Source: Convolutriloba macropyga (lineage: Eukaryota). From it: 64,000 nt of DNA. Where the stretch lies: assembly GCF_964194025.1 (NCBI RefSeq), contig NC_134476.1, positions 25,792,001 to 25,856,000 on the forward strand. The letters run 5' to 3'. Both the position numbers and the translations under genes were made by a program. Below the pieces are notes generated by a model that worked only from the letters and a program-made list of their open reading frames with translations, ran no database searches and was not told the origin of the DNA. Positions 37,624 through 63,737 of this stretch are shown piece after piece (the first letter of the stretch is position 1; the number at the start of each line of letters is the position of its first letter).

Positions 37624-40194
37624 ATGCGCAATTAATTTAGTTTTGAATGCTAGAGCCGAATAAACTCATAAAAAGCTCTTCTCTCTCATGATGAAATTAA
37701 ACGTTTTGTAGGATCAAGCAATCCTTCTGTTCGTATCGATAAATTTTCTCTCGGAACTGCTCAAGATTTCCTATTGGAATCTCTTCTTATTGGAAATCAT
37801 TTTGTTACTCCACAAAAATGTGATCTCAAAATATTCAAAATAAAATGGATGATATTATAACTGATGTTTTAAATATTATAATTGATGTTTAAAAAAAAAC
37901 AATCAATTATATTGGCAGGATGTCAAATATGCATAATAAAACTCGAGTCAGAACAAAAATTATTACCTTGAGATTAAAGCCAACATCTTTTCGTGTCACA
38001 TTGAGACAATCACCAGTGATAACTTTAGGCTTACTGATCCGCTTGAATATTATTGCAGAAGTTCTTGAGTACTAACTATTCTCGTTTGATAATTTGGATC
38101 TTATATGTTTTGTCCCCCCCCCCCACCTTAGCGAGCTAAATTTTTTTATGCCCCCTAGAGCACAAGCTATTTTTTACATAAAAACGTTCTATATAACAAA
38201 ATAAAAAGTGTAACTGGGGGGAAGTGAAAAACACTGGTGCAAAACAGAATAGATAAAATCTTTTTGATGAGATTCCAGATCCGATTTTACAAATGATGCC
38301 AGAATTTCGTATCAGTCTCCAAATCAAATTTACACAACAAAAATTTTTAGGAAAAAGTCAGTCAATAATTCGATCTTTTTATTATCAATGATGCTACAAA
38401 TATTAATCAATTATAATTTTTAACAATTATGGGAAGCGTTATGTTAAACTGGTGAAAGCTGAAAGAGGAATAACTCCTAGGCTTGTACAGATAGCTACAG
38501 TCGGCAAGTATCAAATATTTTCGTTTAACACATCGCGTAAAATATTGAATGAAGCTTTTATTATTAGCCACACGCAAGAGACTTCAACTCTCTTACAAAA
38601 TAAAACAGTTAAGCAAGCTTCAGCCCCCTATGGATAAGAGTTTTATATTGCTAACAGTTAACAAACAATCCTAAACCATTCACTAACATAAACGATCAAC
38701 AAAACAAACAATAAAAATAATCAAGTTTAACCTTAGGACTGCTTTAAAGAAAAATGAAAACACACAAATTTAAACTTAATATTAAACGATTATAATGATT
38801 TCTGTTGAATTATTTTCACAATATTGCATGAAAAACAATCTGAAAAACTTTAAACCTTAGTGTGAAATTTAATTCAAAAGCCTGATGGAGCAAAATTATA
38901 TAATGAGCATTGTCATGGATAAAAACTTATACGATTTTTCCGTTAAATTTGTGGATTTGAAAAAGTTCAAATTGCTAGGTTGTTATTGAATAACATTGTG
39001 CGTATTAACTTATTGAAAAAGTGGAATTACTTTTTTTGTAGAAACAAATTGAGTTGTGGAGATTGTAGAATTAAAAGATTATATTTCAGTTGGTTTTTAA
39101 TAGAAATTGAAACTCGCCATTATAATGATTTGAGACTCTGCATCGAAGCACCATCTGAAATAAATTCTGAAAACATTTTTTACGGATAGTGAAAACGAGA
39201 GTAAAGTAGGCTTAATCACGGCCCCAGGTTTGCCGTTGAACCTGAATGCTCCCAACAAAAGCATGCTCCCCGAAATATATACCACCTTCAGCGGACAAAA
39301 CGATTAAACTAAATGGGTAAAATGGATACGCGCTACCTGTTATAGGCTATGCTTGACTTTCGTTTTTTGCAAAAAAAATACAAAACAAAATCAGTGGAAT
39401 GCATTCAAGGGCAGGCAACATCCTGGATACTTAGCTACAGTTCCAAATGCTACAAAGAACGATTAAAGAGACTGAAACTGTTTCTACTGTTACACTAATT
39501 AAAATTGCATGCTTTATTGATGTTAATATTGATACTTAATTGAATTTAGAAAACCAAAATTCTAATCAGATTAGTAAAAAAATATGGAAGGTGAAATCTC
39601 TCTCTCTTTCTCTCAAAAATGCAAACAATTATCTTTTTTCTGGTGCAGCGTGGTTTATTTTTTAATATACATTGTTCTTGTGCTTCAAGTTGCTCAGACC
39701 ATACGGGGTCAGATGGAGTACTAACATTTTTTTTTGATTCACCAATATGGGAAACGTTACGCTAAGATGAAAATAACCGAAAAAAGATGGGTAACTATGC
39801 ATATGAAACTTTAAATTGTCAACTTTGACCTTAAAAATGATCTAAAGAAAACCGGATAAAAACAAACTTATACGGAAAATTAAACGCTTTTAATGTTTTC
39901 AAATAATTATTTTTACAATAGTGCATAACAATCAACCTGAAAATTAGTAAAAATTAGGGTAAAATTTCATTCAAAAGCTTGATGGAGAATACTTTTTAAT
40001 GCGCATTGTCATGAATAAATTGTTATGAATTTTCTTTATGTTTGTTTTGGATTTAAAAGAGATTAGATCGCTAGAATGTTAATGAATATCATTTTGCGTA
40101 ATAACTTGATGAAAAAAGTCATTTTTTGTAGAAATAGATTGACTAGTGGGGATGGTGCAAGGGAAAGATTTTGAATCGGTTAGTTCTTTCAAAG

Positions 40195-40961
40195 AGATTG
40201 AAATTCGCTATCGGAATCATTTGGGACTCTGCATCAAAATAGCATTTGAAGTAAGTAGCGCAAATCAATTTTTATGGATAGAGAAAGCGAGAATTAAGTA
40301 GTCATAATTATGACCCAAATTTTTCACGGAAACTGAAAGTTTACAACGAAAGTCTGGAAGGCCTTTACTTACACAAAACAAACGTATCATCTTTAGCGGG
40401 CAAAAAGACCAAACTAAATGCGTAAATTTATTATGCGCCACCTTCCACAAGCTATGCCTCTCCTTCTTCATGTTTCGCAAATACAAAAGACATCAAATCA
40501 ATGAAAGGCATTCAAAGGAAAACTACATCATTGATACTTAGGTATAGATCCAAGTGCTACAAAGAAACGACTGATGAGACTGAAACTGTCTTCTTGAATT
40601 GATTTTGCATAATTTCTTGGTGCTGATATTGGTACTAATTGGAAATAAGAACATCAATTCTCTAAGCAGATCAACCGTTGAAGATCACTCAGGTATAAGA
40701 CAAAACGAGCAATTAATGGTACTAAAAACAAAAACTGCGATCGCCAATAAAAAAATTTTTAACAAAGTCAGTCACTTAATATGATAATGAAAGTAGGCAA
40801 AGTAAACCGAAAACATATAGACAAATAACTTCACAATTGTACTCCAATTACTTTCAAAAAGAATATTTGGAGGGTAATATATGTTTTTGGGCAATAATTT
40901 GAGGTTGTGAAAAATGAAATTTTGTGCATACAGTCAGATCAACCGTAAGTGAAAGGTGAAA

Positions 40962-41048
<87 letters not shown>
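40195..41048 (+). mobile_element. LINE ORF2 C-terminus with (CT)n tail, the core of the satellite unit (other copies ~39100-39615, 43165-43570, 44930-45748, 47120-47551, 49400-49788, 50080-50615, 52730-53330, 63090-63585)
   Basis: Broken translations across copies (TKVWKAF, NVSS..TKLNAYINY, GIQRK..YKERLMRLKL, ELHDLLILISVL.G, WNYFHKE..EFNMCSWA.NCSC) are collinear with ORF 14433-15086. Confidence 0.8.
40965..41048. repeat. (CT)42 microsatellite; related runs at ~42070, 43529, 44385, 45700, 47486, 52410 and 53246
   Basis: Directly visible; in the LINE-containing units the run follows GTGAAAGGTGAAAAC or a variant. Confidence 0.95.
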
Positions 41049-41053
<5 letters not shown>

Positions 41054-43534
41054 CTACCAACAAAAACTTTTTTGGTTCGCAGACGAGTTGAAACCTCAAC
41101 ACATTTTGAGTCACTCGCTGCTAGAAGTAAACACGCTTATATTCTGGGCTGTCCCTAGCTTTTGGCTAAATCTTTTACAATTTACTATGTTGTTTTGGTG
41201 CTTCAAGTTGCTGAAACCTTTAGGGCTCAGGTAGAGTACAAACACATCTCGTTTGGTTAATTTGATGAGGTTGCAGATTCGATTTTGTAAAACATGCAAA
41301 CAATGCTTAACAGTCTCAGAATCAAAATTACACAAACTCACATAAAAAATGTCGATCTTTATCAGTATAGCATCTTTTTTTAATATCACTGATGCTACAC
41401 ACCTTGATCAATCTTTCTGTTCGTCAATATAAAAAGCGTTAAGATAAATTGTTGATAACTGAAAAATTAATAAGTCTCTGACATTTACTGATAGTCATAG
41501 ATGAAGAGTATAAATTATATTTCATTAAACACATCAGGCAAACTATTGAACGAATTTCTTGTGAATAACCACGCACAAAATACGTAGTATTTTTTACAAA
41601 TTGGAACAGTTCAGCAAGCCTCAGTTCTCGATTCAATATGGATATGAATTATCCAATCGTCAATTTTAGCCTAAAAATTGTCTTGAAGAGAACCGAATAA
41701 AAACTTATATTCGCAAAAACCAACGCTTATAATGGTTTCTCTTCAATTGTTTTCGCAATAATGCCAGAAAATTAAATTGAAAACTGTTACAAAAAAAACT
41801 TAAAACTTAATTCAGAAGCCTGATGGAGTAAAAAGTTATAATGAGCAATGTCATGGATAAATTCTCATACAATTTTTATAATTATTTTGGATTTGAAAAA
41901 AAAAACTAAATTGCTAGGTTGTTTTTGAATAATATTGTGAGTAACAACCTTCTGAAAAATACTCTTTTTTGTAGAAAGAAATCGGGAAAAAAATGGAGTA
42001 GTGGAGATGGGAGATTTGAAACACTAGAGATTAGTTGTTTGTTAAACTTAAATTAAAATTCTCTGAAAACTCTCTCTCTCTCTTTCTCCCTCTCTCGCTT
42101 TCTCCCTAAAAACTACGAACAAATAAATTTTTTGTTGGTGCAGCGGACAAATTGAAGCCTCACCAAATTTTGAGTCACCTGCAGCTAGAAGCAAATACGT
42201 CTAAACTCCGTGCTTTCCCTATCTTTTGGCTAAATCTAATACATTTTACTGAATGTTGTTTTTGTGTTTCAAGTTGCTCAGACTGTCAGAGTTCAGCCGG
42301 AGTACTAACAATTATCGTGTCATCTTTTTGGTTAGGTTGAAGATCCACTTTTGCAAAACAAGCAAACAATGGTTAGTAGTCTTCGAGAAAAATTTACTCG
42401 AGCCAACACATAGAAAATGTCGATCATTATCAAGATAGACTTTTTTCAATATCACTGATGTTACACATTTTGAGCAAATATTTCGAGCGTTCACTAATAA
42501 AAGAGCGTTCACCACATTTTGAGCGTTCACCAATAAAAGAAGCGCTAAGTTAGAGTGTTGATAACTGAAAAAGTAAAAAGATTCTGAGCGTTACTGATAG
42601 TCAGAGATGAAAAGTATCAAATTTTCTCATTAAACACATCTTGCAAACTGTTCAACGAAATTTTTGTTATTAACTGCTCACAAACAACGTAGATTTTTCA
42701 GAAAGTTGAACAGTTCAGCAAGCTTCAACTCCCACTCCACTATGAATAAGAAATATTAAATCGTCAACTTTAGCTTTAAAACCTTTTTAAACAGAAACGG
42801 AACAAAAATGTTTAGACGCAAAAATAAGCGCTTATAATGGTTTCAGTTGAACTATTTTAACAATAGTGCATAAAAAACAGCAAATTGTTACAAAAAATAG
42901 GAAAATTATTTCAAAAGCCTGATGGAGTAAAAATATATAATGAACAATGTCATATGTCATGGATAAATTCTTATGCATTTTTTTTCTTTAACATTTTTGG
43001 ATTTCAAGAAAATTAAATTGCTAGGTTGTTATTAAATAATATTATTTGTAAAAAGTTACTGAAAAAATAGATTTTTGTGGAAAAAAATTACAGAAATAAA
43101 AAGAGTAGTGGAGATGCGAGAATTGAAACAGTAAAAGTCAGTTGGTTGTTTAATAGAAATTAAAACTGGCTGTTATTAATGCTGATATCGGTACTACAAG
43201 GATATTAGAACATCAATTCTCTAATCAGATCAACCCAAAGCGTTGACGATCACTCAAGTATAAAACAAAAGGAGCAATTGATGATACCAAAAACAAAAAC
43301 TACGAACGCGGATCAAAATACATGTAACAGAGTCAGTTACTTAACGTAATACTGAAAGTAGGAGAAGTAAACTGAAAACATTTAGACAAAAAATGTTTCA
43401 AAATTATAATGGAATTATTTTCACAAAGAAAACTTGGAGTTTAATTTGTGATCCTGGGCAACCAATTGCTGTTGTGAAAATTGAAATCTTGTGCATACAG
43501 TCATATCAACTGTAAGTGAAAGGTGAAAACTCTC

Positions 43535-43571
<37 letters not shown>

Positions 43572-45699
43572 GAAAACTACCAACAATTATTTTTTTTTGG
43601 TTTAGCGGACCAGTTGAAGCCACAACACAATTTGAGTCACCCGCTGCTAGAAGTAAAAACGCTTATATTCTGTGCTGTCCCTAGATTTGGCTAAATCTTT
43701 TACAGTTTACTATATGTTGTTTTGTTGTTTCGGTTTGCTCAAACCTTTGGGAGTCAGGTGGAGTACTAACAAATCTCATTTGGTTAATTTGATGAGGTTG
43801 CAGATTCGATTTTCTAAAACATGTATAAATTATAAATTATTTTTCATTAAACAGATCTGGCAAACTATTGAACTAATTTCTTTTGAATAACCACGCACAA
43901 AAGACGTAGATTTTTTTTAAATGGGAGTTGTTCAGCAAGCCTCAATTTTCGATTCACTATGGATATGAATTATTCAATCGTCAATTTTAGCCTAATAACT
44001 GTTTTGAAGAAACCCGAATAAAAACTTTTCTTCGCAAAAACCAATGCTTATAATGGTTTCTCTTCAATTGTTTTCACAATAATGCATGAAAAATAAATTG
44101 AAAACTGTTACAAAAAAACTTAAAATTTAATCCAGAAGCCTGATGGAGTAAAAATTTATAATGAGCAATGTCATGGATAAATTCTTATACAATTCTTTTT
44201 AATTATTTTAGATTTGAAAAAAATTAAATTGCTAGGTTGTTTTTGAATAATATTGTGAAGAACAACTTGCTGAAAAACACACTGTGGTGTAGAAAAAAAC
44301 TAGAGAAAAAAAAGAGTAGTGGAGATGGGAGATTTGAAAGACTAGAAATCAGTTGGTTGTTAAACTTAAATTAAAACTTTGAAAACTCTCTCTCTCTCTC
44401 TCTCGCTTTCTTCCTCAAAACTACAAAGAATTAAATTTTTTGTTGGTGCAGCGGACAAATTGAAGCCTCACCAAATTTTGAGTCACCTGCAGCTAGAAGC
44501 AAATACGTCTAAACTCCGTGCTTTCCCTATCTTTTGGCTAAATCTAATACATTTTACTGAATGTTGTTTTTGTGTTTCAAGTTGCTCAGACTGTCAGAGT
44601 TCAGCCGGAGTACTAAAAATTATCGTGTCATCTTTTTGATTAGGTTGCAGATCCACTTTTGCAAAACAAGCATACAATGGTTAGTAGTCTTCGAGAAAAA
44701 TTTACTCAAGCCAACACATAGAAAATGTCTATCATTATCAAGATAGCCTTTTTTCAATACCACTGATGTTACACATTTTGAGCAACTTTTTCGTTCACCA
44801 ATATAAGAATCGTTCAATTAGATTGTTGATTAGACTGAAAAAGTAATAAGATTCTGACCGTTACTGATAGTCAGAGATGAAAAGTATCAAATTTTCTCAT
44901 TAAACACATCTTGCAAACCTTCTTTCAAAGAGGTTGAAATTCGCTCTCGGAATCATTTAGGACTCTGCATCAAAATAGAATTTGAAATAAGTAGCGCAAA
45001 TCGATTTTTATGGATAGAGAAAGCGAGAATTAAGTAGTCATAATCATGACCCAAATTTTTCACGGAAACTGAAAGTTTACAACGAAAGTCTGGAAAACCT
45101 TTACTTACGCAAAACAAATGTATCATCTTTAGCGGGCAAAAAGACCAAACTAAATGCGTACATTAATTATGCGCTACCTTCCACAAGCTATGCCTCTCCT
45201 TCTTCATGTTTCGCAACTACAAAAAACACCAAAACAATGAAAGGCATTCGAAGGAAAACTAAATCATTGATACTTAGGTATAGTTCCAAGTGCTACAAAG
45301 AACGACTGATGAGACTGAAACTGTCTTCTTATATTGATTTTGCATAATTTTTTGGTGCTGATATTGGTACTAAATGGAAATAAGAACATCAATTCTCTAA
45401 CCAGATCAACCGTTGAAGATCACTCAGGTATAAGACAAAACGAGCAATTAATGACACTAAAAACAAAAACTGCGAACGCCAATAAAAATATTTTTAACAA
45501 AGTCAGTCACTTAACATGATAATGAAAGTAGGCAAAGTAAACCGAAAACATATAGACAAATAACTTCACAATTGTACTCCAATTACTTTCACAAAGAATA
45601 TTTGGATGGTAATATATGTTTTTGGGCAATAATTTGAGGTTGTGAAAATTGAAATCTTGTGCATACAGTCAGATTAACTGTAAGTGAAAGGTAAAAACG

Positions 45700-45743
<44 letters not shown>

Positions 45744-47486
45744 ATCTCTGAAAACTACCAACAAATACTTTTTTGGTTCGCGGACGAGTTGAAGCCTCAA
45801 CACATTTTGAGTCACTCGCTGCTAGAAGTAAACACGCTTATATTCTGTGCTGTGCCTAGCTTTTGGCTAAATCTTTTACAATTTACTACAAGTTGTTTTG
45901 GTGTTTCAAGTTGCTCAAATCTTTAGGGCTCAGGTAGAAGACAAACAAACCTCGTTTGGTTAACTTGATGAGGTTGCAGAATCGATTTGTAAAACATGCA
46001 AACAATGCTTAACAGTCTCAGTATTAAAATTACACAAACCCAAATAGAAAATGTCGATCTTTATCAATATAGCATCTTTTCTTAATATCAATGATGCTAC
46101 ACACCTTGATCAATCTTTCTGTTCGTCAATATAAAAAGCGTTAAGATAAATTGTTGATAACTGAAAAATTAATAAGTCTCTGACATTTACTGATAGTCAT
46201 AGATGAAAAGTATAAATTATATTTCATTAAACACATCCGGCAAACTATTGCACGAATTTTTGGTGAATAACCACGCACAAAATACGTAGTATTGGAACAG
46301 TTCAGCAAGCCTCAGTTCTCGATTTAATATGGATATGAATTATCCAATCGTCAATTTTAGCCTAAAAATTGTCTTGAAGAGAACCGAATAAAAACTTATA
46401 TTCGCAAAAACCAACGCTTATAATGGTTTCTCTTCAATTGTTTTCGCAATAATGCCAGAAAATTAAATTGAAAACTGTTACAAAAAAACTTAAAACTTAA
46501 TTCAGAAGCCTGATGGAGTAAAAAGTTATAATGAGCAATGTCATGGATAAATTCTCATACAATTTTTATAATTATTTTGGATTTGAAAAAAAAACTAAAT
46601 TGCTAGGTTGTTTTTGAATAAAAATATGAGTAACAACTTTCTGAAAAGTACACATTTTTGTAGAAAAAAAACGAAAAAAAGAGTAGTGGAGATGGGAGAT
46701 TTGAAAGACTACAAATCAGTTGGTTGTTAAACTTAAATTAAATTTCTCTGAAAACTCTCTCTCTCTCTCTAAAAAACTCTTTATAAAACTAAACGCTTAT
46801 AAAGGATTCAGTGGAACTATTTTAACAAAAGTGCATAAAAAACAGCAAACTGTTACAAAAAATGGAAAAATTATTACAAAAGCCTGATGGAGTAAAGATA
46901 AATATTGAACAATGTCATGGTTAACTTCTTATGCAATTTTTTCTTTATTTTTTTGGATTTCAAAAAGATTAAATTGCTAGGTTGTTATTGAATTATAATA
47001 TTCGTAAAAACTTACTGAAAAAATAGATTTTTGTAGACAAAAATTAGAGAAATAATAACAGTAGTGGAGATGCGAGAATTGAAACAGTAAAGGTCCGTTG
47101 ATTGTTTAATAGAAATTAAAACTGGCTGTTATTGATGCTGATATCGGTGCTATATGGAAATTAGACCATCAATACTCTAATCAGATCAACCCAAAGCGTT
47201 GCAGATCACTCAGGTATAAAACAAAAGGAGCAATTGATGATACCAAAAACAAAAACTACGAACGCGGCTCAAAATACATGTAACAGAGTCAGTTACTTAA
47301 CGTAATACTGAAAGTAGGAGAAGTAAACTGCAAACAATTAGACAAAAAATGTTTCAAAATTATAATGGAATTACTTTCTCAAAGAAAACTTTGAGTTTAT
47401 TATGTGTTCCTGGGCAATCAATTGCTGTTGTGAAAACTGAAATCTTCTGGATACAGTCAGATCAACCATAAGTGAAAGGTGAAAAC

Positions 47487-47531
<45 letters not shown>

Positions 47532-50500
47532 CTCTCTCTCTCTCTCTCTCCCTGAAAACTACCAACAAATAGTTTTTTGGTTCAGCGGACAAGTTGAAGC
47601 CTCAACACATTTTGAGTCACCCGCTGCTAGAAGTAAAAACGCTCTTATTCTGTGCTGTCCCTAGCTTTTGGCTAAATCTTTTACATCTTACTGTGTTTTG
47701 TTTTGATGTTTCAAGTTGCTCAAACTTTTAGGAGTCAGGTAGAGTACTAACAAATCTTGTTTGGTTAATTTGATGAGGTTGCAGATTCGATTTTTTAAAA
47801 CATGTATAAATTATAAATTATTTTTCATTGAACACATCAGTTAAACTATTGAACGAATTTCTTGTGAATAACCACGCACAAATAACGGAGATTTTTTTTA
47901 ATGGGAACAGTTCAGCAAGCCTCAGCTCTCGATTCACTACGGATATGAATAATTCAATCGTCAATTTTAGCCTAAGAACTGTTTTGAAGAAAACGGAATA
48001 AAATTTTTATTCGCAAAAAACCAACGCTTAAAATAGTTTCTCTTCAATTGATTTCACAATAATGCATGAAAAATAAAATGAAAATTTTTACAAAAAAACT
48101 TAAAACTTAATTCAGAAGCTTGATGGAGTAAAAATTTATAATGAGCAATGTCATGGATAAGTTCTTATACAATTCTTATAATTAATTTGGATTTGAAAAA
48201 AAATTAAATTGCTAGGTTGTTTTTGAATAGTATTGTGAGTAACAACTTGGTGAAAAGTACATTTTTGTGTAGAAAGAAAAAACTTGAAAAAAGAGTAGTG
48301 GAGATGGGAGATTTGAAAGACTAGAAATCAGTTGGTTGTTAAACTTAAATTAAAACTCTCTGAAAACTTTCTCTCTCTCCCTCGCGCGCGCTTTCTCCCT
48401 CAAAACTACGAACAAAAAAAATTTTTGTTGGTGCAGCGGACAAGTTGAAGCCTCAAAAAATTCTGAGTCACCCGCTGCTAGAAGCAAACACGTCTAAATT
48501 CCGTGCTTTCCCTATCTTTTGGCTAAATCTATTACATTCTACTGAATGTTGTTTTTGTGTTTCAAGTTGCTCAGACTGTCAGAAATCAACCGGAGTACTA
48601 ACAATTATCGTGTCATCTTTTTGATGAGGTTGCAGATCCACTTTAAGTGCTTACTATTCTCTGAGACAAATTTGCTCAAGCCGACACATAGAAAATATCG
48701 ATCATTATCAAGATAGCTTTTTTCAATATCACTAATGTTACACATTTTGAGCAATTTTTTCGTTCAGCAATATAAGAAGCGTTAAGGTAGATTGTTGATT
48801 ACTGAAAAAGTAATAAGATTCTGACCGTTACTGATAGTCACAGATGAAAAGTATCAAATATTCTCATTAAATACATCACGCAAACTGTTCAACGAAATTT
48901 TTGTTATTATCTGCTCACAAACAACGTAGATTTTTCACAACATTGAACTGTTCAGCAAGCTTCAGCTCCCATTTCACAAGGAATAAGAATTATTAAATTG
49001 TTTGTCAACTTTAGCCTTAAAACCTTTTTAAACAAAAACGGAACAAAAAAATTTAGACGCAAAACTAAACGCTTATAATGGTTTCAGTTGAACTATTTTA
49101 ACAATAGTGCATAAAAAAACGGCAAACTGTTACAAAAAAAACAGAAAAATAATTTCCAAAGCCTGATGGAGTAAAAAATATATAATGAAAAATGTCATGG
49201 TTAAATTCTTATGCAATTTTTTCTTTAATATTCTTGGATTTCAAAAAGATTAAATTGCTAGGTTGTTATTGAATAATATTATTTGTGAAAACTTACTGAA
49301 AAATTAGATTTTTGTAGAAAAAAATTAGAGAAATAAAAAGAGTAGTGGAAATGCGAGAATTGAAACATTAAAAGTCAGTTGGTTGTTTAATAGAAATTAA
49401 AATTGGCTGTTATTGATGCTGATATCGGTGCTATATGGAAACTAGACCATCAATTCTCTAATCAGATCAATCGAAAACGTTAAAGATCACTCAGGTATAA
49501 AACGAAAGGCGCAAATAATGTAACCAAGAACGAGAACTACGAACGCCGACTAAAATGTTTGTAAAAGAGTCATTTACTTAACATAAAACTGAAACTAGTA
49601 AAAGTAAACCGCAAACATTTAGACAAAAATTATCTCAAAAACTTACCGGAATTGACTTTACAAAGAATATAATGACGGTAAGATGTGTTCCCGGACGATC
49701 AATTTTAGTTGTGAAAAATAAAATCCTGCGCAGAAAGTCAGATAAACGGCTAATGAAATGTGAAAATTTTCTATCTCTCTCTCTCTCTCAACACTGCAAA
49801 CAGTTACTTTTTGGAACAACGGACCAGTTGAATGCTCAACACCTTCTGGGTCATCAGCGGCTACAGGGAAAAAACGTTTTAGTTCCGTGTTTCCCTAGCT
49901 GTTGGCTAATTCTTTTACATTTTACTATCCGTTGTTCTTGTAGATTGTTAGATTGTTATTAAATAATTGTGTTAGTAATAATTTACTGAAAAAACAAATC
50001 ATTTTTGTAGAAATAGATTGACTTGTGGGGAAGGTGGAATTGAAAGATTATAAATCAGTTAGTTATTTCATAGAAGTTCAATTTGGTTACTGGAATCTTT
50101 TGGGACTCTGCATAAAACCAGCATGTGAACAAATTTATTTAAACCAATTTTTTTGATCGGAAAAAACGAGATTTAGGTGGGCATTGTTATGACCCAAATT
50201 TGACTGAAACAGTCTAACTAATTCAAATTGCCTAATTTATTGATGCTGATATCGGTACTACAAGGAAATTAGACTATCAATTCTCTAATCAGATCAACCC
50301 AAAGCGTTGAAGATCACTCAAGTATAAAACAAAAGGAGCAATTGATGATACCAAAAACAAAAACTACGAACGCCGATCAAAATACATGTAACAGAGTCAG
50401 TTACTTAACGTAATACTGAAAGTAGGAGAAGTAAACCGCAAAAATTCAGACAAAAAATATTTCAAAATTGTAATGGAATTACTTTCACAAAGAAAACTCG

Positions 50501-51234: not shown

Positions 51235-52360
51235 TAAAATCGTCTTGGATACGCAACATGGATATTAAATCGTCTTGCAATGGAACATTAAGCCGTCAAC
51301 ATCTAAATTTTCAATTTACATTAGAAACAACGGATGACAAAAACAGTTTTCCATTTCCGGACATGTCAATTAACGTACAACCGGATGGCACAAATTTGCA
51401 CCCCTTCAACTTATGAAAAGCATAATACAGGGAAGAATAATCCGCCTGTTCCAATACACTAGTAATTGGGAAGCGTTCTATGAAGCAATGACAAAAAATG
51501 GAAACATTTGAGATTGTAAACAATATTCTAGGCAATGGGTAGGGAAAATTTTCAAGGATACATTTAACCAGCTGTGAATGAAAGAACAAAGAAAAGGATA
51601 AAACGCTGGTGTAGACGTAAAACAACAGAAAAACACTGAGAAACAACAAATTGTATTACAAAACGGAAGCAAGATTTCTAAGGAATTTGTAAGAAACCAG
51701 AACAAAATCCATCCTGTGCAGACATTTTTTACCACTCCAATATTTATGAGCTGTTTACCTAGCCTTAAATCAAGCTTTGATGAAGATCCCAAACCCCACG
51801 TGATTGATAAACTCATTGGTAATGCATGCAAATCCATCTATGTAGGGCAGAGATGCCGACATATTACCACAAGGGTTGCAGAGCATGTCAAAGTGAACTC
51901 ACCGATGGAATTAAACGCAATTGAGTGTAACGGCGATAAAACAGCTTTCGAGTGAAAGATATAAGACCAGTGCGGCAACAAATTTAATTAATGACACCAA
52001 AGGCGTTTTATTTAAGAACACTGGAAATGGTCACCAACACGCGCGACGGATACCGAACACGAGAATTGACACTGGAAGCTTAGATTGGAGATAAAAATTC
52101 AACTTGAAATGAAAGAAGGACACGTTACAAAACGAAAATTTCTACATCACAATTGAACACAACGAAGTAAGTTGAGATAATATAAGAATGGTTTTTCAAA
52201 CAAAACATATGGATATGCATCTGCCATATCAAATTGAAAACATACATATAATCAGATAAAAAATTTTGTAAATACGACTGTAGTTATGTAAAAAATTGTT
52301 TTTAGATTCCTTAAATTTGCATTAGACTTTTTTAATTTGCATTTTATTTTATGGTTTTTC
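51235..52360 (+). mobile_element. Penelope-like element fragment 1 (RT thumb + GIY-YIG; internally deleted, no ribozyme)
   Basis: QHLNFQFTLE...FPFPDM; CLPSLKSSFD..PHVIDKL...CKSIYVGQ..RHITTRVAEH, a GIY-YIG pattern. Confidence 0.8.
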
Positions 52361-53246
52361 CTAAATCCTGTGCAAAAATTCAGATCAACGGTTAATGAAG
52401 TTTGAAAACTTTCTCTCTCTCTCTCTCTCTCTCTCTCAACACTGCAAACAATTACTTTTTTGGAACAGCAGACCAGTTGAATGCTCAACACCTTCTGTGT
52501 CATCCGCGGCTACAGGGAAAAAATGTTTAAATTCCGTGTTTCCCTAGCTGTTGGCTAATTCTTTTACAATTTACTATACGTTGTTATGGTAGATTATTAG
52601 ATTGTTTTTGAATAATTGTGTTAGTTATAATTTACTGAAAAAAACAAATCATTTTTTTAGAAATAGATTGACTTGTGGGGATGGTGGAATTGAAAGATTA
52701 TGAATCAGTTAGTTCTTTCAGAGAAGTTGAACTTGGTTACCGGAATCATGTGGGACTCTGCATCAAACCAGCATATGAAAAAAAATTATTTTGAACCAAT
52801 TTTTCTGGTCGGAAAAAACGACATTTAGGTGCTCATTGTTATCATCCAAATTTGACTGAAACAGTCACACTACTTCAAATTGCCTAATTTATTAATGCTG
52901 ATATCGTTACTACATGGATATTAGAACATCAATTCTTTAATCAGATCAACCCAAAGCGTTGAAAATCACTCAGATATAAACCAAAAGGAGCAATTGATAA
53001 TACCAAAGACAAAAACTACGAACGCCGATCAAAATACATGTAACAGAGTCAGTAACTTAACGTAATGCTGAAAGTAGGAGAATTAAACCGCAAACATCTA
53101 GACAAAAAAAATTTCAAAATTGTAATGGAATTACTTTCACAAAGAAAACTTGGAGTTTAATATGTCTTCCTGGGCAATCAATTGCTGTTGTGAAAATTGA
53201 AATCTTGTGCATACAGTCAGATCAACCTTAAGTGAAAGGTGAAAAC

Positions 53247-53328
<82 letters not shown>

Positions 53329-53949
53329 CCTGAAAACTACCAACAAATAGTTTTTTGGTTCAGCGGACAAGTTGAAGCGTCAACACATTTTGAGTCACCC
53401 GCTGCTAGAAGTAAAAACGCTATTTTGTGCTGTCCCTAGCTTTTGGCTTTATCTTTTACAGTTTACAATATGTTGTTTTGGTGTTTCAAGTTGCTCAAAC
53501 CTTTGGGGCTCAGGTAGAGTACTAACAAATCTCGTTTGGTTAATTTGATGAGGTTGCAGATTCGATTTTGTAAAACATGCAAACATTTCTTACCATTCTC
53601 AGAAAGAAAGTACACAAGCTCAATTAAAAAAGGTCGATCTTTATGAAGATAGAATTTTTTTTAATATCACTGATGCTACATATTTTGATCAATTTTTTAA
53701 ATCGTCGTTTTAAGAAGCGTTAAGCTAAATAATTAATAAATTTTTCAAAAAAGAGAATTCTCCGGCCTGTATTGATATTCACAGATGAAGAGTATCAAAT
53801 ATTTTCTTTAAACATTTCGGGCAAACTAATGAATGAGTTTTTTCTTTTTAGACGCACACACATGATGTAGATTTCATAACAAAGTGGAAAACTTCAGCAA
53901 GCTTCAGTTGTCATTCCACTATGGATCTGGAACATTAAATTGACATTTT

Positions 53950-55230
53950 TTTGAATTATTGAATCCTCTTGGATACGCAACATGGATATTAAATCGTCTT
54001 GCAATGGAACATTAAGCCGTCAACATCTAAATCTTCAATTTACATTAGAAACAACGGATGACAAAAACAGTTTTCCATTTCCGGACATGTCAATTAACGT
54101 ACAACCGGAGGGCACAAATTTTTGTACATGTTATCAAAAACCATCATATACTGGAACAATTCTGCACTATCGTAGCTGTGCACCCCTTCAACTTAAGAAA
54201 AGCATAATACAAGGAACAATAACCAGCCTGTTCAGAAACACTAGCAATTGGGAAGCCTTCTATGAAGCATTTACATAATGGGAAACATTTGAGATTGTAA
54301 ACAATATTCTAGGCATTGGGTAGGGAAAATCGTCAAGGATACATTTAACCAGCTGTGAAAGAAAGAACAGAGAAAGGGATAAAACAATGGCGTAGCCTTA
54401 AAACAACAGAAAAACACTGAGAAACAACAAATTGTATTACAAAACAGAAGCAAGATTTCTACGGAAATTGTAAAGAGACTGAGAAAATTCATCCTTTCCA
54501 GACAGTTTTTACCACTCCAAAACTTATGAGCTGTTTACCTAGCCTTAAGTCAAGCTTTGATAAAGACCTCAAACCCACGTGATTGATAAACTCACTGGTA
54601 ATAGATGCAAATCCATTTATGTAGGGCAGAGTTGCCGACCTATTACCACAAGGGTTGCAGAGCATGCCGCATTGAACTCCCCGATGGAATTAAACGCAAT
54701 CGAGTGCAACGGCGGTAAAACAGGTTTCGAGTGGAGGATATAAGACCATTGCGGCAACAAATTTAAGTTAATGACACTAAAGGCGTTTTATTTAAGAACA
54801 CTGGAAATGGTCATCAACCTACGACGCATACCGAACACGAGAATTGACACTGAAAGCTTAGTTTGGAGATAAAAATTCAAATTGAAATGAAAGAAGGACA
54901 CGTTACAAAACGAAAATTTCTACTTCACAATTGAACACAACGAAGTAAGTTGAGATAATTTTTTAATGATTTTTCAATAAAAAACATTTGGATATGCATC
55001 TGCCATATCAAATTGAAAATATACATATAATCAACTGTAACATTTTGTAAATATGACTGTAGATATGTAAAAAATGGGTTTTAAATTCCTTGAATTTTCG
55101 TTAGACTTTATTAATTTGCATTTTATTTTATGGCTTTTCAATTTAGCAATTTGTATTCTTTTTAAACTGACGATGACCTTGGACTTCAAAACAATTGTAA
55201 GAAAACTTTTGATTGGCGATCGTTTTTTAA
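53950..55230 (+). mobile_element. Penelope-like element fragment 2 with 3' hammerhead relic
   Basis: LQFTLETTDDKNSFPFPDMSI...YQKPSYTGTILHYRSCAP..KKSIIQG (PLE thumb), GIY-YIG remnant, ORF end ~54861, CTGACGA motif at 55167. Confidence 0.85.
55160..55205 (+). ncRNA. degenerate minimal hammerhead ribozyme (PLE-type); paralogues at 57768-57812 and 60150-60197
   Basis: CTGACGA-stem II-AAAA-C-AATT-GTA with a palindromic stem III (ACAATTGT). The core GAAA reads AAAA. It sits at the 3' end of Penelope fragments, as expected. Confidence 0.65.
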
Positions 55231-55439
55231 ATAGTTAGCCTTAAAGCCGTTCTAAAAAAACAAAATACAAAAATTTAAACGCAGAAATAAATGCTGATAA
55301 TAGTTTCTGTTGAATTAACTCAACATTAGTGCATAAAAAACAAACAGCAAACCGTTACAAAAAACATAAAAATTATTTCATGAGCCTGATGGAGTAAAAC
55401 CATATAATGAGCACAGTCATGGATAAATTGTTTTGCAGG

Positions 55440-56562
55440 ACTTTCGTTTTTAAGTCAGACTGTCTAGAAAGTATCACTAGGAGCGCCGGGCACTCCAGTC
55501 AGTCGAAAGGACCTGTCATCAAAAAAACCCGGGCACGCTCAACAATTCAAAAGAAGGAATGCAACAACTGAGAAGGAATTCAACGATAAAATTGACAGAT
55601 TGAGTGACAGGAGAAAATCCAAAAAAACAGCTGCGCTACCAAAATCAATTGAAAACATATCTTCAGAAAAGCATTACAAATAAAAAATTTTGTCAACTGT
55701 GATTTTGTCGTTAACAGTACCCAATACGCAAGCAGCATTGGATTTTTCGATTGCAAGGGAGATACTCTGTATTCAAAAACTGCCAGCTCTAGGCTCCCTA
55801 TTCAAAAAACAGAAAGATATAAATAGGTCTTTCAAAAACTCTTCGGCGAACGGTCCCGCAGGCTCTTGAACTTCAAATGCTAAGGTTTGAAACATTTAAT
55901 TTTTTTCAACAACCTTTATACTTGTCATTCTTTCTCACCTCGGCTTCCACTGCAGCAGTTCCAGGGTTAACACCGAGCCTGCAGACAACCGACTGGGAGC
56001 AAAAACATCCACCACAGTTAAATCTCACATCAGTTGTTTGCCTTGTTTCCAGGGTACAATAGTCATACCATCAGGTCGTTTTGTCGGTTCTGTAGAGATG
56101 AGCTAGTTCTAAAACAGAGGGAACACGAACAGAGGCTGAAGTTTGTTTAAACAGGTGTTTCAGATTAGTGTGACGTGAGAGTCTCCCTGCACTCCGTACA
56201 CAAGAAAGCCTATGCAGACCCGAGGCTTCATTTTTTTACCACAAACACATATGTGAGTCTCGCAAATTTTTGCACCCGAGCGAAGCCCAACAGAAAATTT
56301 CAACTGCTGATTGGACAACTTAAGATTAACGTTTTTGCAAGGTAAAACAATTAAACCTTGTATTGCAAACTTATCTAGATAGAGGTTTAATCGCTTCTCT
56401 CTGTCCTCACCTCACTTGGGCATAAAATCGGTTAGAACTTTTTGATACATAACCTTGTTCGTTGTATGGTGCTTCGAGGAATCCTGTTACTAATTACCAC
56501 ACTTCAGACCGCAATTGAACTCTTTGTCTTCGAACTCCTCTGCAAAGTGGTGTTCCAGTACC
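55440..56562 (-). mobile_element. CRE-type retrotransposon 3' fragment (zinc knuckle + REL endonuclease), copy A
   Basis: Minus strand: HIC..C...GLHRLSCVRSAGRLSRHTNL, RPDG, AAVEAEVRKNDKY, LAFEV, QRISLAI..SNAACVLGT. Confidence 0.8.
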
Positions 56563-56564
56563 AG

Positions 56565-57840
56565 TAACTTTATGAATTATTAAATCGTCTTGGCTATGCA
56601 ACATGGATATTAAATCGTCATGCAATGGAACATTAAGCCGTCAACATTCAAATCTTCAATTTACATTAGAAACAACGGATGACAAAAACAGTTTGCAGTT
56701 TCCGGACATGTCAATTAACGTACAACCGGAGGGTACAGTTTTCTGCACATGTTATCAAAAACCATCATATACTGGAACAATTCTGCACTATCGTAGCTGC
56801 GCAACCCTTCAACTTAAGAAAAGCATAATACAGGGAACAATAATCCGCCTGTTCCGAGGCAACCGCAATTGGGAAGCGTTCTACGAAGCATTGACAAAAA
56901 TTGGAAACATTTGAGATTGTAAACAATATTCTAGGCATTGGGTAGGGAAAATTGTCAAGGATACATTTAACCAGCTGTGAATAAAAGAACAAAGAAAAGG
57001 GTAAAATGCTGGCGTAGCCGTAAAACAACAGAAAAACACTGGGAAACAATAAATTGTATTACAATACAGAAGCAAGATTTCTAAGGAATTTGTAAAGAAC
57101 CTGAACAAAATTCATCCTGTGCAGACAGTTTTTACCACTCCAAATTTTAAGAGCTGTTTACCTAGCCTCAAATCAAGCTTTGATAAAGACCTCAAACCCC
57201 ACGTGATTGATAAACTCACTGGTAATGGATGCAAATCTATCTATGTAGGGCAGAGATGCCGACATATTACCACAAGGGTTGCAGTCCAATGGAATTAAAC
57301 GCAATTGAGTGCAACGGTGATAAAATAGCTTTCCAGTGAAAGATATATGACCAGTGCGGCAACAAATATAAGTTAATGACAATAACGGCGTTTTACTTCA
57401 GAACACTGGAAATGGTCATCGACACGCGCGACGGATACCGAACACGAGAATTGACACTGAAAGCTTAGTTTGGAGATAAAAATTCAGTTAGAAACGAAAG
57501 AAGGACATTTAACATAACGGAAATTTCTACTTTACAATTGAACACAACAAAGTAAATTGAGATAATTTATGAATGGTGTTTCAATAGAAAACATATGGAA
57601 ATAAATCGTCCATATCAAACTGAAAATATACACATAATTAGATGTAAAAATTTGTAAATATGACTGTAGATATGTAAAAAATTGGTTTTAAATTCCTTGA
57701 ATTTGCTTTAGACTTTATTAATTTGCATTTTATTTTATGGCTTTTCATTTTAGCAATTTGTATTTTTTTTAACCTGACGATGACCTAGGAGTTCAAAACA
57801 TTTGTAGGAAAGTTTTTGATTGACGATCGTTTTTTAAATC
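56565..57840 (+). mobile_element. Penelope-like element fragment 3
   Basis: ORF 56603-56914 is near-identical to 53982-54278; hammerhead relic at 57774. Confidence 0.85.
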
Positions 57841-58044
57841 GTTAGCCTTAAAGTCGTTCTAAAAAAAACAAAAAACAAAAATTTATACGCAAAAATAAAC
57901 GCTGATGATAGTTTCTGTTGAATTAATTTAACAATAGTGCATAAAAAACAAACAGCAAACAGATACAAAAAACATAAGAACTATTTCAGGAGCCTGATGG
58001 AGTAAAACTATATAATGAGCACAGTCTTGGGTAAATTGTTTTGC

Positions 58045-59022
58045 AGGGCTTTCCTCTTTAAATCAGACTGTCTAGAAAGTATCGCTACGAGCGCAGGCCA
58101 CTCCAGTCAGTCAAAAGGACCTGTCATCATAAAAGCCCGGGCATGCTCAACAATTCAAAAGAAGGAATTCAAGAACTGAGAATGAATTCAACTATAAAAT
58201 TGACAGATTGAGTGACAGGAGAAAATCCAAAAAACAGCTGCGCTAGCAAAATTAGTTGAAAACACATCTTCAGAAAAGAATTACAAATAAAAAAATTTCG
58301 TCATCTGTGGTTTTGTCGTTAACAGTACCAATACGCAAGCAGCCTTAGCTATTTCGATTGCAAGGGAGATCCTCTGTATCCAAAAACAGCCAGCTCTAGG
58401 CTCATTATTCAAAAAACAGAAAGATATAAATAAGTCTTTCAAAAACTCTTCGGCGGACGGTCCCGCAGACTCTTGATCTTCAAAAGCTAAGGTCTTGAAC
58501 TTCATACCATCAGGTCGTTTTGTCGGTTCTGTAGAGATGAGCTAGTTCTAAAACAGAGGGAGCACAAACAGAGGCTGAAGTTGGTTTAAACAGTTGTTTC
58601 AGATTAGTGTGACGTGAGAGTCTCCCTGCACTCCGTACACAAGAAAGCCTATGCAGACCCGAGGCTTCATTTTTTTTTACCACAAACACATATGTGAGTC
58701 TCGCAAATTTTTGCACCCGAGCGAAGCCCAACAGAAAATTTCAACTGCTGATTGGACAACTTAAGATTAACGTTTTTGCAAGGTAATACAATTAACCCTT
58801 GTATTGCAAACTTATCTAGATAGAGGTTTAATCGCTTCTCTCTGTCCTCACCTCACTTGGGCATAAAATCGGTTAGAACTTTTTGATACATAACCTTCGA
58901 CCAAATCTTCTGATGTTCGTTGTCTGGTGCTTCAAGGAATCCTGTTACTACTTACCACTCTTCAGACCGCAATTGAACTCTTTGTCTTCGAACTCCTCTG
59001 CAAAGTGGTGTTCCAGTACCAG
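58045..59022 (-). mobile_element. CRE-type 3' fragment, copy B (internal deletion)
   Basis: ORFs 58281-58505 (LAFE..GPSAEEFLKDL..EPRAG..QRISLAI..AACVL) and 58510-58731. Confidence 0.8.
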
Positions 59023-59024
59023 TA

Positions 59025-60225
59025 ACTTTATGAATTATTAAATCGTCTTGGCTATGCAACATGGATATTAAATCGTCATGCAATGGAACATTAAGCCGTC
59101 AACATTCAAATCTTCAATTTACATTAGAAACAACGGATGACAAAAACAGTTTGCCATTTCCGTACATGTCAATTAACGTACAACCGGAGGGTACAGTTTT
59201 CTGCACATGTTATCAAAAACCATCATATACTGGAACAATTCTGCACTATCGTAGCTGCGCAACCCTTCAACTTAAGAAAAGCATAATACAGGGAACAATA
59301 ATCCGCCTGTTCCGAGGCAACCGCAATTGGGAAGCGTTCTACGAAGCATTCTACAAAGAAAAAGATAAAACGCTGGCGTAGTCGTAAAAGAGTAGAAAAA
59401 CACTGAGAAACAACAAATTGTATTACAATACAGAAGCAAGATTTCTAAGGAATTTGTAAAGAACTCGAACAAAATTCATCCTGTGCAGACAGTATGTACC
59501 ACTCCAAAACTTTTTAGCTGTTTATCTAGCCTTATGTCAAGCTTTGGTAAAGACATCAAACCCCACGTGATTGACAAACTCAGTGCTAATTGATGCAAAT
59601 CCATCTACGCAGGGCAGATATGCCAAAATATTACCACAAGGGTTGCAGAGCATGCCAAGGTGAACTCACCGATAAAAATTAAACGCAATTAAGCGCAACG
59701 GTGATAAAATAGCTTTCCAGTGGAAGATATAAGACCAGTGCGGCAACAAATTTAAATTAATGACACTAAAGGCATTTTATTTAAGAACACTGGAAATGGT
59801 CATCAACACGCGCGACGGATACCGAACACAAAAATTGACACTAAAAGCTTAGTTTGGAGATAAAAATTCAACTTGAAATGAAAGACGGACACGTTACAAA
59901 ACGAAAATTTTTACTTTACAATTGAACACAACAAAGTAAGTTGAGATAATTTATTAATGATTTTTCAATAAAAAACATTTGGATATGCATCTGCCATATC
60001 AAATTGAAAATATACATATAATCAAATGTAAAATTTTGTAAATATGACTGTAGATATGTAAAAAATGTGTTTTAAATTCCTTGAATTTGCATTAGACTTT
60101 ATTAATTTGCATTTTATTTAATGGCTTTTCATTTTAGCAATTTGTATTCTTTTTATCCTGACGATGACCTCGGAGTTCAAAACATTTGTAGGAAAGTTTT
60201 TGATTGACGATCGTTTTTCATATCG
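59025..60225 (+). mobile_element. Penelope-like element fragment 4
   Basis: ORF 59061-59381 is near-identical to 56603-56914; hammerhead relic at 60158. Confidence 0.85.
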
Positions 60226-60429
60226 TTAGCCTTAAAGTTGTTCTAAAAAAAACAAAAAACAAAAATTTATACGCAAAAATAAACGCTGATGATAGTTTCT
60301 GTTGAATTAATTTAACAATAGTGCATAAAAAACAAACAGCAAACAGTTACAAAAAACATAAGAACTATTTCAGGAGCCTGATGGAGTAAAATTATATAAT
60401 GAGCACAGTCTTGGATAAATTATTTTGCA

Positions 60430-62820
60430 GGGCTTTCCTCTTTAAATCAGACTGTCTGGAAAGTATCGCTACGAGCGCTGGGCACTCCAGTCAGTCAAAA
60501 GGACCTGTCATCATAAAAACCCGGGCACGCTCAACAATTCAAAAGAAGGAATGCAACAACTGAGAAGGAATTCAACGATAAAATTGACAGATTGAGTGAC
60601 AGGAGAAAATCCAAAAAAACAGCTGCGCTACCAAAATCAATTGAAAACACATCTTCAGAAAAGCATTACAAATAAAAAATTTTGTCAACTGTGATTTTGT
60701 CGTTAACAGTACCCAATACGCAAGCAGCATTGGATTTTTCGATTGCAAGGGAGATACTCTGTATTCAAAAACTGCCAGCTCTAGGCTCCCTATTCAAAAA
60801 ACAGAAAGATATAAATAGGTCTTTCAAAAACTCTTCGGCGAACGGTCCCGCAGGCTCTTGAACTTCAAATGCTAAGGTTTGAAACATTTAATTTTTTTCA
60901 ACAACCTTTATACTTGTCATTCTTTCTCACCTCGGCTTCCGCTGCAGCAGTTCCAGGGTTAACACCGAGCCTGCAGACAACCGACTGGGAGCAAAAACAT
61001 CCACCACAGTTAAATCTCACATCAGTTGTTTGCCTTGTTTCCAAGGTACAAGAGTCATACCATCAGGTTGTTTTTGTCGGTTCTGCAGAGCTTTCTCAGA
61101 ACTCAAAACCCAGAGCTTTCTCCGAACTCAAAACCCGTATAAGATCTTCCAACACAACTTTATAATCATCGGCTAATTTTCCATCATCTGTGTACCATTC
61201 ATTTTCAACTGCACATCATTCAAAAGTACTTGAATTGTCTGTGCAAAAACGAAAAAGGCTCCAGGATACCCCTATTGCGTCCCCTCTTCAGATGAGATGA
61301 TTGTAATGTCCTAAATTAGGAAACTAGGCTTGCTGTGGGCTGATAATCAAAAGGATACACAGTGGGTCTTATAGCATGCACAAGTTTTGACATAGTCTCT
61401 CGGTTCAGGGAATTAAATTTATTTTTAAAATCCAACCTACGCAAAACATGCTTTTAAAGAGACGGCTTTTCAAGAATGTTTTAGGAAAAATGGGCCGCGA
61501 TCTCTGCTCCAATTTGGGTTTTTCCAAAGTATTCCTTTCGTTAATCTGAGACTTTGGATCCACCGCACTTTGCAACGACTCTCCGCAAGGTGTTGCCTAT
61601 CGCAATGGGCCGTAGACCACCATCTTTTTTAACAAAAGCGATTAATTTAGCTCCAAAGAAAAACAGTCTAATATTTTCTGGGACTGTGTTATTTGGAGTT
61701 ACACTCACCAGTTCTGTAAGACTTTTCCAAAACTCGTGCCCAGTGCTTCCATTAGAATTAAACACAAATACTTTCAAAACTTGAGGAGCCAAGCCATTGG
61801 GGCCAGCGCCAGACCCAGTAGGAAAATGTGTTATACTTTTGTAAACGTTGTACTGGCTGGCTATAAAACTGTCAATATTTTCAAAGAAAGGAACATTAAT
61901 AGAACTACACTTCGAATGTTTAGAAAACAATTTCTCATAGTTTTTAGTGTTAAAGGGTGCAAAAGAATCATCAGAGCTAGCTAAAAGTATTCCCGCTTTT
62001 ACATTGCTTACTAATTTAGCTGGAATAAATTTATTACGCTTTTCAAAGTCAGAGTCCTTCTTGACAATGGAGTCCTCAGTATCAGCTTTCGTCAAAGTCA
62101 GATTATTGCTTCGTATTTTTTGGCTGATTACAGATTTGATACTTTTATTTTTTCTATCCGATCTTTTGGATTGACCCAAAAAAGACATGATGGCTTTAAA
62201 AAACTAACCAACTAAGACACGCTTGGTTCTCTGATTATATCATCAATATTTTTCGATTAAGCTTGCAGCTACAAGAGCACGTGAATCGCTAGGAACTCTT
62301 TTCAAAAACCGAGTTTTGAGGCTTTCATCACACTCTCAAGGGTGAGCTCATTAGAACACTAATGGTCTTTTAACCGAACATTGAAACATTTAACTCACTT
62401 GTAAAGTTCTAGTTTCTCACTTTCAGGGAGATTTGAAGGTGCGCAAACACCATGGTACCAAATTTTACCAAAATTGCAATGAATCCAATTTAGAATTCCA
62501 GATAGCTTAGAGCAGTTTTCGGTGTTCCACAAAGCGTTGCCTCTCTTTGGCAGCACTATTAAATAAAGGAGTAAAAATGGAAAAAAAACGAGCATACACC
62601 AGCCAAAAGGCCTCAACGAAAATTCAACTGTAGAAAACACTATCACTAAACCGAATTTAACAGTGAAAAACAAGACTTAAAAACACACAAACATACCTTA
62701 AAAAGGAACGGTCTCACCGGTTTCCAGTCGATGGAGTAAGAATAAGCCCAACTTTCGGGACAAAACAACAAATCAGCCACAGAGGGTTCCGACGATATCG
62801 GGACAACAAAAGGAGCAAGA
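60430..62820 (-). mobile_element. near full-length degenerate CRE-clade non-LTR retrotransposon (PHD-like N-terminus, RT, REL)
   Basis: ORF 61541-62188 has SGAGPNGLAPQVLK...FFGAKLIAFVKKDGGLRPIAIGNTLRRVVAKC. LKRVPSDSR lies upstream; degenerate GTQ*GYP and YTDDG lie downstream; the REL region is at 60665-61070. Confidence 0.85.
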
Positions 62821-63691
62821 TCATTGTGATCATTTACATTCTCTGAAACTATTTAATAAGATAATCACAACAATTAGGCTAAAAGGAACATTATATTAAG
62901 GAAAAAAAATTCCTCAATGTTTTTGGATTTGAAAAATATTAAAGTGGTAGGTTATTGAATAATTTTGTGCGTAATATTTTACTGAAAAAGAAGAATTATT
63001 ATTTGTAGAAATAAATTGAGCAGTGCAGATGGAGGAGTGAAAGATTATAAATCAGTTGGTTGTTTAATAGAAGACGGGCTCTTGGAATGTTTAATAGAAA
63101 ACTGGCTCTTGGAAGACACTGCATCGAACCAGCATCTGAAATAAGTATTGGAAACATGTTTTATAGAATGAGAACGGAGAGTAGGCATAATCAGGGCCCC
63201 AAATTTGTCTGAAACAGTCACAGTACGTCGAATTGCATGATTTATTGATCCTGATATCGGTGCTATATGGAAAAAGACCATCAATTCTCTAATCAGATCA
63301 ACCGAAAATGTTGAAGATCACTCAGGTATAAAACAAAACGAGCAAATAATGAAACCAAAAACGAGAACTCCGAAAGCCGGCGAAAATGTTTTTAAAGAGT
63401 CATTTACTTAACATAATACTGAAAGTAGGAAAAGTAAACCGCAAACGTTTGGACAAAAAATATGTCAAAATTGTACTGGAATATGCGGAGGGTAATATGT
63501 GTTCTTGGGCGATCAATTGCAGTTGCGAAAATTGAAACCCTGTGCAGACAGTCAGATCAACGGTAAATGAAAGTAAAAACTCTAAAATATTAGTTCAAAT
63601 CATAATTTTGACTAAATGAGAATGCATAGGGCAAAAAACATTTTGTGCATGACAAAACGAAATTTGCAAAACCTCCACTAGAGGGATACAG

Positions 63692-63737
63692 TTTTAACCT
63701 GACGATGAACGTAAAGTTCGAAAACGTTTGTTTTACC
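63692..63737 (+). ncRNA. minimal hammerhead ribozyme-like motif with intact core
   Basis: CTGACGA-T-GAAC-GTAAA-GTTC-GAAA-ACGT-TT; stem II is GAAC/GTTC, stem III is palindromic, and stem I has only ~3 bp. Confidence 0.55.

Follow-up and report, generated by a model that had tools for sequence, protein, structure and literature searches.

The stretch of Convolutriloba macropyga DNA considered here, called the window throughout, covers 64,000 nucleotides (C9:25792001-25856000 of a 1.18-Gb assembly; contig NC_134476.1) and contains a tandem array in which the 3' end of a long interspersed nuclear element (LINE) recurs together with (CT)n tracts. The reading that we favour, with a probability of roughly 0.9, is that one truncated LINE insertion was amplified as DNA along with its flanks, and that deletions and duplications of whole blocks later altered the product. 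What results is a segmental tandem array in which the LINE end travels as a passenger or, at most, counts as a co-founder. A first-pass annotation of the window had instead taken the whole 25 kb between 38370 and 63590 for a tandemly amplified LINE 3' end and for a satellite arising from it. Both descriptions go too far, since no more than about 20% of that interval is LINE or (CT)n, and the array is a single-locus one of about 14 monomers, not a genome-wide satellite.

The anatomy of the array can be read directly from self-BLAST and a module map. The window was extended rightwards by four 10-kb loci (L025-L028), and coordinates above 64000 refer to this extension. All units are direct and lie on the + strand, occupying 38263..64000 of the window and 38.3-65.4 kb of the extended sequence in head-to-tail repeats only, and self-BLAST finds no inverted matches within the array. 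The left edge is at 38263 and the right edge at 65391, about 1.4 kb outside the window; the limits proposed earlier were thus displaced at both ends, even though the last LINE piece does end at 63583. The locus measures roughly 27 kb, or about 46 kb when a recent duplication is counted, in a window that is AT-rich (G+C of about 31-38%). Primary units are 70-92% identical to each other, that is, they diverge by 8-30%, and blocks of 2-4.7 kb within the array are 83-93% identical. As the reference unit, we use no consensus monomer but the most complete natural one, 39796..41636 (+), whose 1,841 bp bear out the earlier estimate of about 1.8 kb. This monomer consists of a Y/Z flank (reference positions 1-465), the LINE (466-1170), the (CT)n tract (1171-1253) and an X flank (1254-1841). 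Across 38263-63590, the LINE represents about 18% and (CT)n 2.5% of the sequence, the flanks X, Y and Z 38%, and other sequence, mostly the inserts R1 and R2 described below, 41%. Satellites in the strict sense have a high copy number, form long homogeneous arrays and usually occupy several loci or heterochromatin; the present array, with about 14 diverged units at one locus, falls short of this definition.

Nine units retain at least 100 bp of LINE, all on the + strand. The founding 5'-truncated 3' end survives as a full-length copy of 705 bp at 40261..40965, which comprises about the last 200 codons of the decayed second open reading frame (ORF2) plus 6 bp of 3' untranslated region (3'UTR), and is followed at 40966..41048 by (CT)42, the expanded LINE tail. 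A second full piece, 95% identical to the first, lies at 44997..45698, and the piece at 39170..39571 keeps the 5' part only (LINE positions 2-411). The 3' half (positions 354-703) followed by (CT)n is found at 43173..43530; 3' halves also stand at 47129..47486, with (CT)n, and at 49410..49766, with a short (CT)n. Another piece, 50141..50594, has an internal deletion that joins positions 2-73 to 318-703 and precedes a short (CT)n, and the one at 52854..53246 (positions 318-703) precedes (CT)41. The last piece, 63209..63583 (positions 320-703), has no (CT)n and is followed by unrelated sequence. As had been noticed before, no long reading frame survives in the repeat: the LINE pieces hold no ORF of at least 110 amino acids, and stops are spread throughout all three frames of 40290-40970. 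In the tail-bearing copies, (CT)n begins right at the LINE end, 6-7 bp beyond the position of the ORF2 stop codon of the parent family.

That parent family is found elsewhere in the genome, where the first-pass annotation had advised looking for full-length LINEs with (CT)n tails. A genome search with 40184-41048 returns more than 15 dispersed matches outside the locus, at 66-72% identity, and most of those that reach the 3' side stop at query positions 779-783, where (CT)n starts. The 12 dispersed copies examined are 66-77% identical to the array pieces at the nucleotide level (E to 1e-64; 66-70% for the full piece at 40261..40965, also with E to 1e-64) and 70-84% identical to each other, and they share a common 3' end while being truncated to a variable extent at the 5' side, the longest alignments covering 1.8-2.3 kb. 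Their 3' ends are built of the ORF2 stop (TGA), 32 bp of 3'UTR and (CT)4-9, after which unrelated flanks follow. The upstream parts of the longer copies align to residues 116-774, reverse transcriptase (RT) included, of an 811-amino-acid ORF2 that bears an RVT_1 domain and comes from the younger family discussed later. Since these dispersed copies match the array piece and end in (CT)4-9, the array descends, to judge by sequence, from an old LINE family that is dispersed in the genome and carries a (CT)n tail. The (CT)n runs of the array, located 3' of the ORF2 end as proposed earlier, are the microsatellite tail of that LINE, with up to 42 units in the array versus 4-9 in the dispersed copies. 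A weak APE match, RVT_1 and microsatellite tails are compatible with the CR1/L2 clade without defining it. Reading frames at two of the dispersed loci, L030 and L038, proved unrelated to the LINE, as they encode a TCR/CXC domain and the RVT_2 of a long terminal repeat (LTR) element.

The old family also appears in tandem at two other places. On C8 (67.822-67.828 Mb; L047:3448-8700), a separate tandem array with a period of 323-366 bp runs over about 5 kb with at least 13 units; it derives from an internal part of the 3' region of the family and is devoid of (CT)n, and a longer LINE copy lies next to it (L047:8718-9983). On C11, at 43.82 Mb (L048:3165-6022 and 976-2236), three copies of the old LINE region stand 0.9-1.5 kb apart, near a pure (ACT)n microsatellite of about 420 units. 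The (CT)n tail is missing from the C8 array and from two of the three C11 copies.

The first-pass annotation had reached the LINE origin of the repeat through a different element, the LINE fragment that encodes a 217-residue ORF at 14433-15086 of the window. Its observations are reproducible and go beyond what chance would yield. All the peptides of more than four residues that it quoted lie within about 10 nucleotides of the places given (RDLG and MTQ, too short for the search, were left out): TKVWKAF at 40346, TKLNAYINY at 45144, YKERLMRLKL at 45294, YVELHDLLILISVL at 63224, WNYFHKE at 43410, 50474 and 53126, and EFNMCSWAMNCSC at 50501, with their partners inside the ORF at 14433-15086 or a short way upstream of it. 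The two 23-mers that it compared, at 40343 and 14475, agree in 20 of 23 bases. In tBLASTn, the 217-residue protein gives collinear matches on the + strand of the window, seven of them in 40-64 kb with E values from 3e-6 to 0.05, plus weaker ones. These are 45099-45338 (3e-6, the best), 50225-50539 (5e-5), 40351-40536 (1e-4), 45536-45643, 40804-40908, 63218-63547 and 52865-53191, and within a unit they follow the order of residues 18-102, then 169-210, then (CT)n about 55 bp further on. The element is accordingly a homologue in the sense of a distant relative, but not the parent: at the protein level, it shares about 25-36% identity with the array pieces and 28-53% with the old family.

Several observations bear on how many insertions the array contains. 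Each of the eight array pieces that keep the LINE end (38-68 kb, extended coordinates) lacks the same 26-bp terminal segment of the 3'UTR. In seven of the eight, the LINE end is followed by (TC)n and then by a common flank, CTGAAAACTACC...GGTTC.GCGGAC..., the exception being the tailless last piece that ends at 63583. Furthermore, when the 3' 350 bp are placed in a maximum-likelihood tree, a branch with 100/100 support separates the eight array copies from nine dispersed ones. The common 3' flank, the common loss of 3'UTR and this branch together indicate that one insertion was amplified as DNA with its flanks, as the earlier annotation had supposed; single origin and co-amplification with the flanks can in this sense be taken as shown. 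The 5' side tells the same story. When 0.8-1.6 kb of upstream sequence from four long dispersed copies was searched against the array by tblastx and word-7 blastn, no LINE sequence upstream of about 40261 was found, the only overlap being the last ~90 nucleotides, which span the junction; the founder was therefore a 705-bp truncated copy. The idea that Y, Z or X could be 5' parts of the LINE was ruled out by tblastx and sensitive blastn.

A rival explanation would build the array by retrotransposition, with successive 5'-truncated copies primed on, or inserted into, the (CT)n tails of earlier ones. Microsatellite-tailed LINEs can target like repeats, satellites are known to start from dimers of transposable elements that repeated insertion has produced (PMC5932611), and the unit lengths do vary. 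However, about 1.1 kb of each full monomer is non-LINE sequence that is common to the units and stands between the LINE pieces, and one and the same flank comes after every (CT)n tract that succeeds a LINE piece, neither of which repeated insertion would be expected to produce. Both full pieces, moreover, begin at one LINE position, the shorter starts recur at 354 (three pieces) and 318-320 (three pieces) in agreement with shared deletion junctions, and upstream LINE sequence occurs in no unit. We consider repeated insertion very improbable, and return to amplification of one insertion with its flanks.

The flanks themselves tie the array to this one place. Flank X is unique to the locus in the 1.18-Gb genome, except for one 67% match to part of it on C2, and all genomic matches to the LINE piece with at least 75% identity fall within the locus. 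That the array should travel as part of a large mobile element, or represent one of several loci of a satellite, is barely credible against these two results. For about 200 bp of Y there are weak matches dispersed in the genome, and this portion may be an older repeat fragment. The edges of the array are in register, with entry at reference position ~1466 (38263) and exit at ~1440 (65391), and with unique DNA beyond both. The tandem duplication of one segment X2-Y-Z-LINE-(CT)n-X1 predicts exactly this. The X module is the junction product of that founding duplication.

The later history of the locus is inscribed in its deletions. Recurrent junctions are found at reference positions 414>819, 538>783 and 1501>1714, together with a loss of about 345-1215. 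Because the breakpoints recur identically, the deleted monomer forms must have been copied in turn, in line with the reshaping by deletions suggested at first.

Within the array there is also a secondary domain, 51221..62906 (+), which the first-pass annotation had counted as part of the LINE repeat and which turns out to be a separate array, mainly of R1 and R2 in the Y flank of one primary monomer. Its units of ~2.5 kb proper, at about 53.9-62.9 kb, contain no LINE piece, and the domain encloses a primary-type unit that does (52363-53916). R1, about 1.2 kb long (e.g. 56645-57853), has matches on many chromosomes, at dozens of loci; R2, about 1.1 kb long (e.g. 55442-56561), has them at the five loci listed. 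In both cases, the identity is about 78-80%. R1 splits Y at reference position ~33 and R2 at ~232-245; past the last and longer R2-type insert, Y resumes at 233 and a LINE piece comes next. As both inserts split Y, and Y resumes after them, the domain is one primary monomer that received two insertions and was re-amplified, so that the order of nesting is visible in the sequence itself. In Pfam, no match was obtained for ten stop-free segments taken from R1, R2 and the 61.5-62.2 kb ORF. The last of these, a 220-residue open frame at 61544-62203 (-) inside the long R2-type insert, which ends in ...GGLRPIAIGNTLRRVVAKC and likewise has no Pfam match, may correspond to the N-terminal region of a polymerase from a retroelement. 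Directly before the R1 inserts (53941-54023 and 56562-56644), the motif of the Y start, ATGGATAT.AAATCGTC, is repeated several times in a small local tandem expansion.

The largest rearrangement is a tandem duplication of 19.15 kb, whose left copy covers 48972..68119 (+, extended) and whose second copy covers 68116-87270. The two copies are directly adjacent and 99.87% identical, with 16 mismatches and 5 gaps. Together they span C9:25840972-25879270 and include array sequence plus about 2.7 kb of the unique right flank. Such a pair of adjacent, nearly identical copies could also arise from false haplotype duplication, and the repeat structure might then be wholly or partly an artefact of assembly, produced by false expansion or duplication, a suspicion favoured by the fact that the supporting runs belong to a single study. 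For the primary monomers, the 8-30% differences among them preclude copies made by the assembler, and an artefact is excluded. For the 19-kb copy, it is unlikely: the junction shows a clean microhomology (TTT.A/CAAGG), contigs from three public runs match exactly, and the word depth in these contigs, about 40x left of 48972 and about 65-80x beyond it, steps up at that position in each of the three runs, from about 40 to about 70-80, as for two real copies. These data suggest that the 19.15-kb duplication is real, and taken over the whole repeat structure, an assembly artefact is quite improbable.

Some points do weigh against the history of one amplified insertion that we prefer. The 5' limit of the LINE homology is known only as about 40261, within +/-20 bp. 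Target-site duplications are not recognisable at 40261 and 41049, the locus being too decayed. A TTTGAT microhomology may exist at the founding junction, which lies inside X and is not cleanly readable. Finally, a single study supplied all three runs, which may be the very data behind the assembly, and word depth in contigs gauges copy number only weakly.

The sequence of events that we propose would be as follows. A LINE of the old family, which had APE and RT domains and ended in a short (CT)n, would have inserted once into unique DNA as a 705-bp 5'-truncated copy. A segment of 1.84 kb, in which the LINE piece and its (CT)n were preceded by about 840 bp of 5' flank and followed by about 200 bp of 3' flank, would then have been duplicated in tandem, and the array would have grown to about 14 units via unequal exchange or replication-based duplication. 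The (CT)n tracts would have lengthened, from 4-9 units to up to 42, deletions at a few breakpoints would have shortened monomers, and these shortened forms would have been copied in their turn. The transposons R1 and R2 would have inserted in one monomer, and a piece of ~2.5 kb across them would have been amplified into the nested secondary array. The most recent event would be the tandem duplication, across a short microhomology, of 19.15 kb of array and right-hand flank. Both the molecular mechanism of duplication and the absence of function are what we infer, and the array is most likely neutral junk DNA amplified by recombination or replication.

A more ambitious version of this history would regard the locus as a long-lived hotspot of tandem duplication, where the (CT)n/(GA)n of the LINE tail forms H-DNA, stalls replication and provokes microhomology-mediated duplications. 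If true, it would explain why amplification took place in three nested rounds (of 1.84 kb, ~2.5 kb and 19.15 kb), and the microsatellite tails of LINEs would act as general satellite seeds in a genome that has the old family in tandem at no fewer than two other loci. The tail is absent from the C8 array and from two of the three C11 copies, which speaks against (CT)n as the driver of amplification; together with the position of the founding and 19-kb junctions, both outside (CT)n, this also weakens the idea that the tail is needed. We regard the hotspot as unlikely.

The LINE fragment around 14433 belongs to a different and younger family. It is a 5'-truncated 3' end with a (CTA)5 tail, at 14334..15143 (+), and is 93-94% identical to related copies elsewhere. 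Copies of the young family at six loci on C5, C11, C12, C13 and C15 (L041-L046) are 99.8-100% identical and differ in their 5' ends, and the longest one fetched contains the 811-amino-acid open ORF2 fragment (RVT_1, E 1e-32, with a weak endonuclease match) and ends in a 40-bp 3'UTR plus (CTA)5. This (CTA)n-tailed family is very young, and its activity is probably recent. The fragment in the window stands just upstream of the exons of a protein tyrosine kinase (+, window 16237-16572 and ~19590-19700, with the motifs GQFGEVW and DFGLAR), and is probably intronic. Decayed LINE RT fragments are also present at 7335-8002 (+), which corresponds to residues 296-514 of the 811-residue ORF2, and at 92239-92739 of the extended sequence (L027), which corresponds to residues 341-509, with E values of 1e-8 to 3e-13 against it. 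The window also holds a separate tandem array at 25390-33516, with a period of about 1.0 kb, about 8 units that are 78-92% identical, and a strong negative GC skew.

Tandem repeats derived from LINEs are well established, as exemplified by the chicken HinfI repeat, the common cetacean satellite, PROsat and Pvc20 (PMC9659126); satellites of this kind being well documented, the present array, small, old and confined to one locus, opens no new question. The closest in composition is the chicken HinfI (SCR1) repeat, with an embedded CR1, whose monomer includes 3'UTR and partial ORF2 (Li & Leung 2006, tabulated in PMC9659126). As in that repeat, the monomer described here combines LINE 3'UTR and partial ORF2 with non-LINE sequence; contrary to it, the array is single-locus, low-copy and strongly diverged, has an expanded (CT)n tail, and contains a nested secondary array and a 19-kb duplication. 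The common cetacean satellite, derived from the 3' end of L1 (PMC9659126), shares with the likewise L1-derived PROsat and Pvc20 a monomer taken from a LINE 3' end or ORF2, as is the case here. However, these three are abundant genome-wide, whereas our array occupies one locus and its monomer is mostly flank.

Tandems of transposable elements can also form by double insertion and expand into arrays (McGurk & Barbash 2018, PMC5932611). The array resembles these in that a transposon is the raw material, but it departs from their model in that its unit has unique flanks, which takes the place of the element-to-element junctions free of shared flank that the model calls for. Because the units include unique flanks, the amplification was segmental, at the DNA level, and did not proceed by repeated insertion. 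In its kb-sized units, its single locus, its higher-order blocks and its change of copy number by unequal exchange, the array is rather like the macrosatellites and higher-order tandem segmental duplications, although its monomers are more diverged (70-92%) than those of typical homogenised macrosatellites and have no coding unit or known function. Set beside these systems, it constitutes a readable record of the birth of a tandem array from a transposon fragment and its flanks, in which the parent family, the bounds of the founding segment, the order of deletions, insertions and the nested array, and the recent 19-kb duplication can all still be followed.

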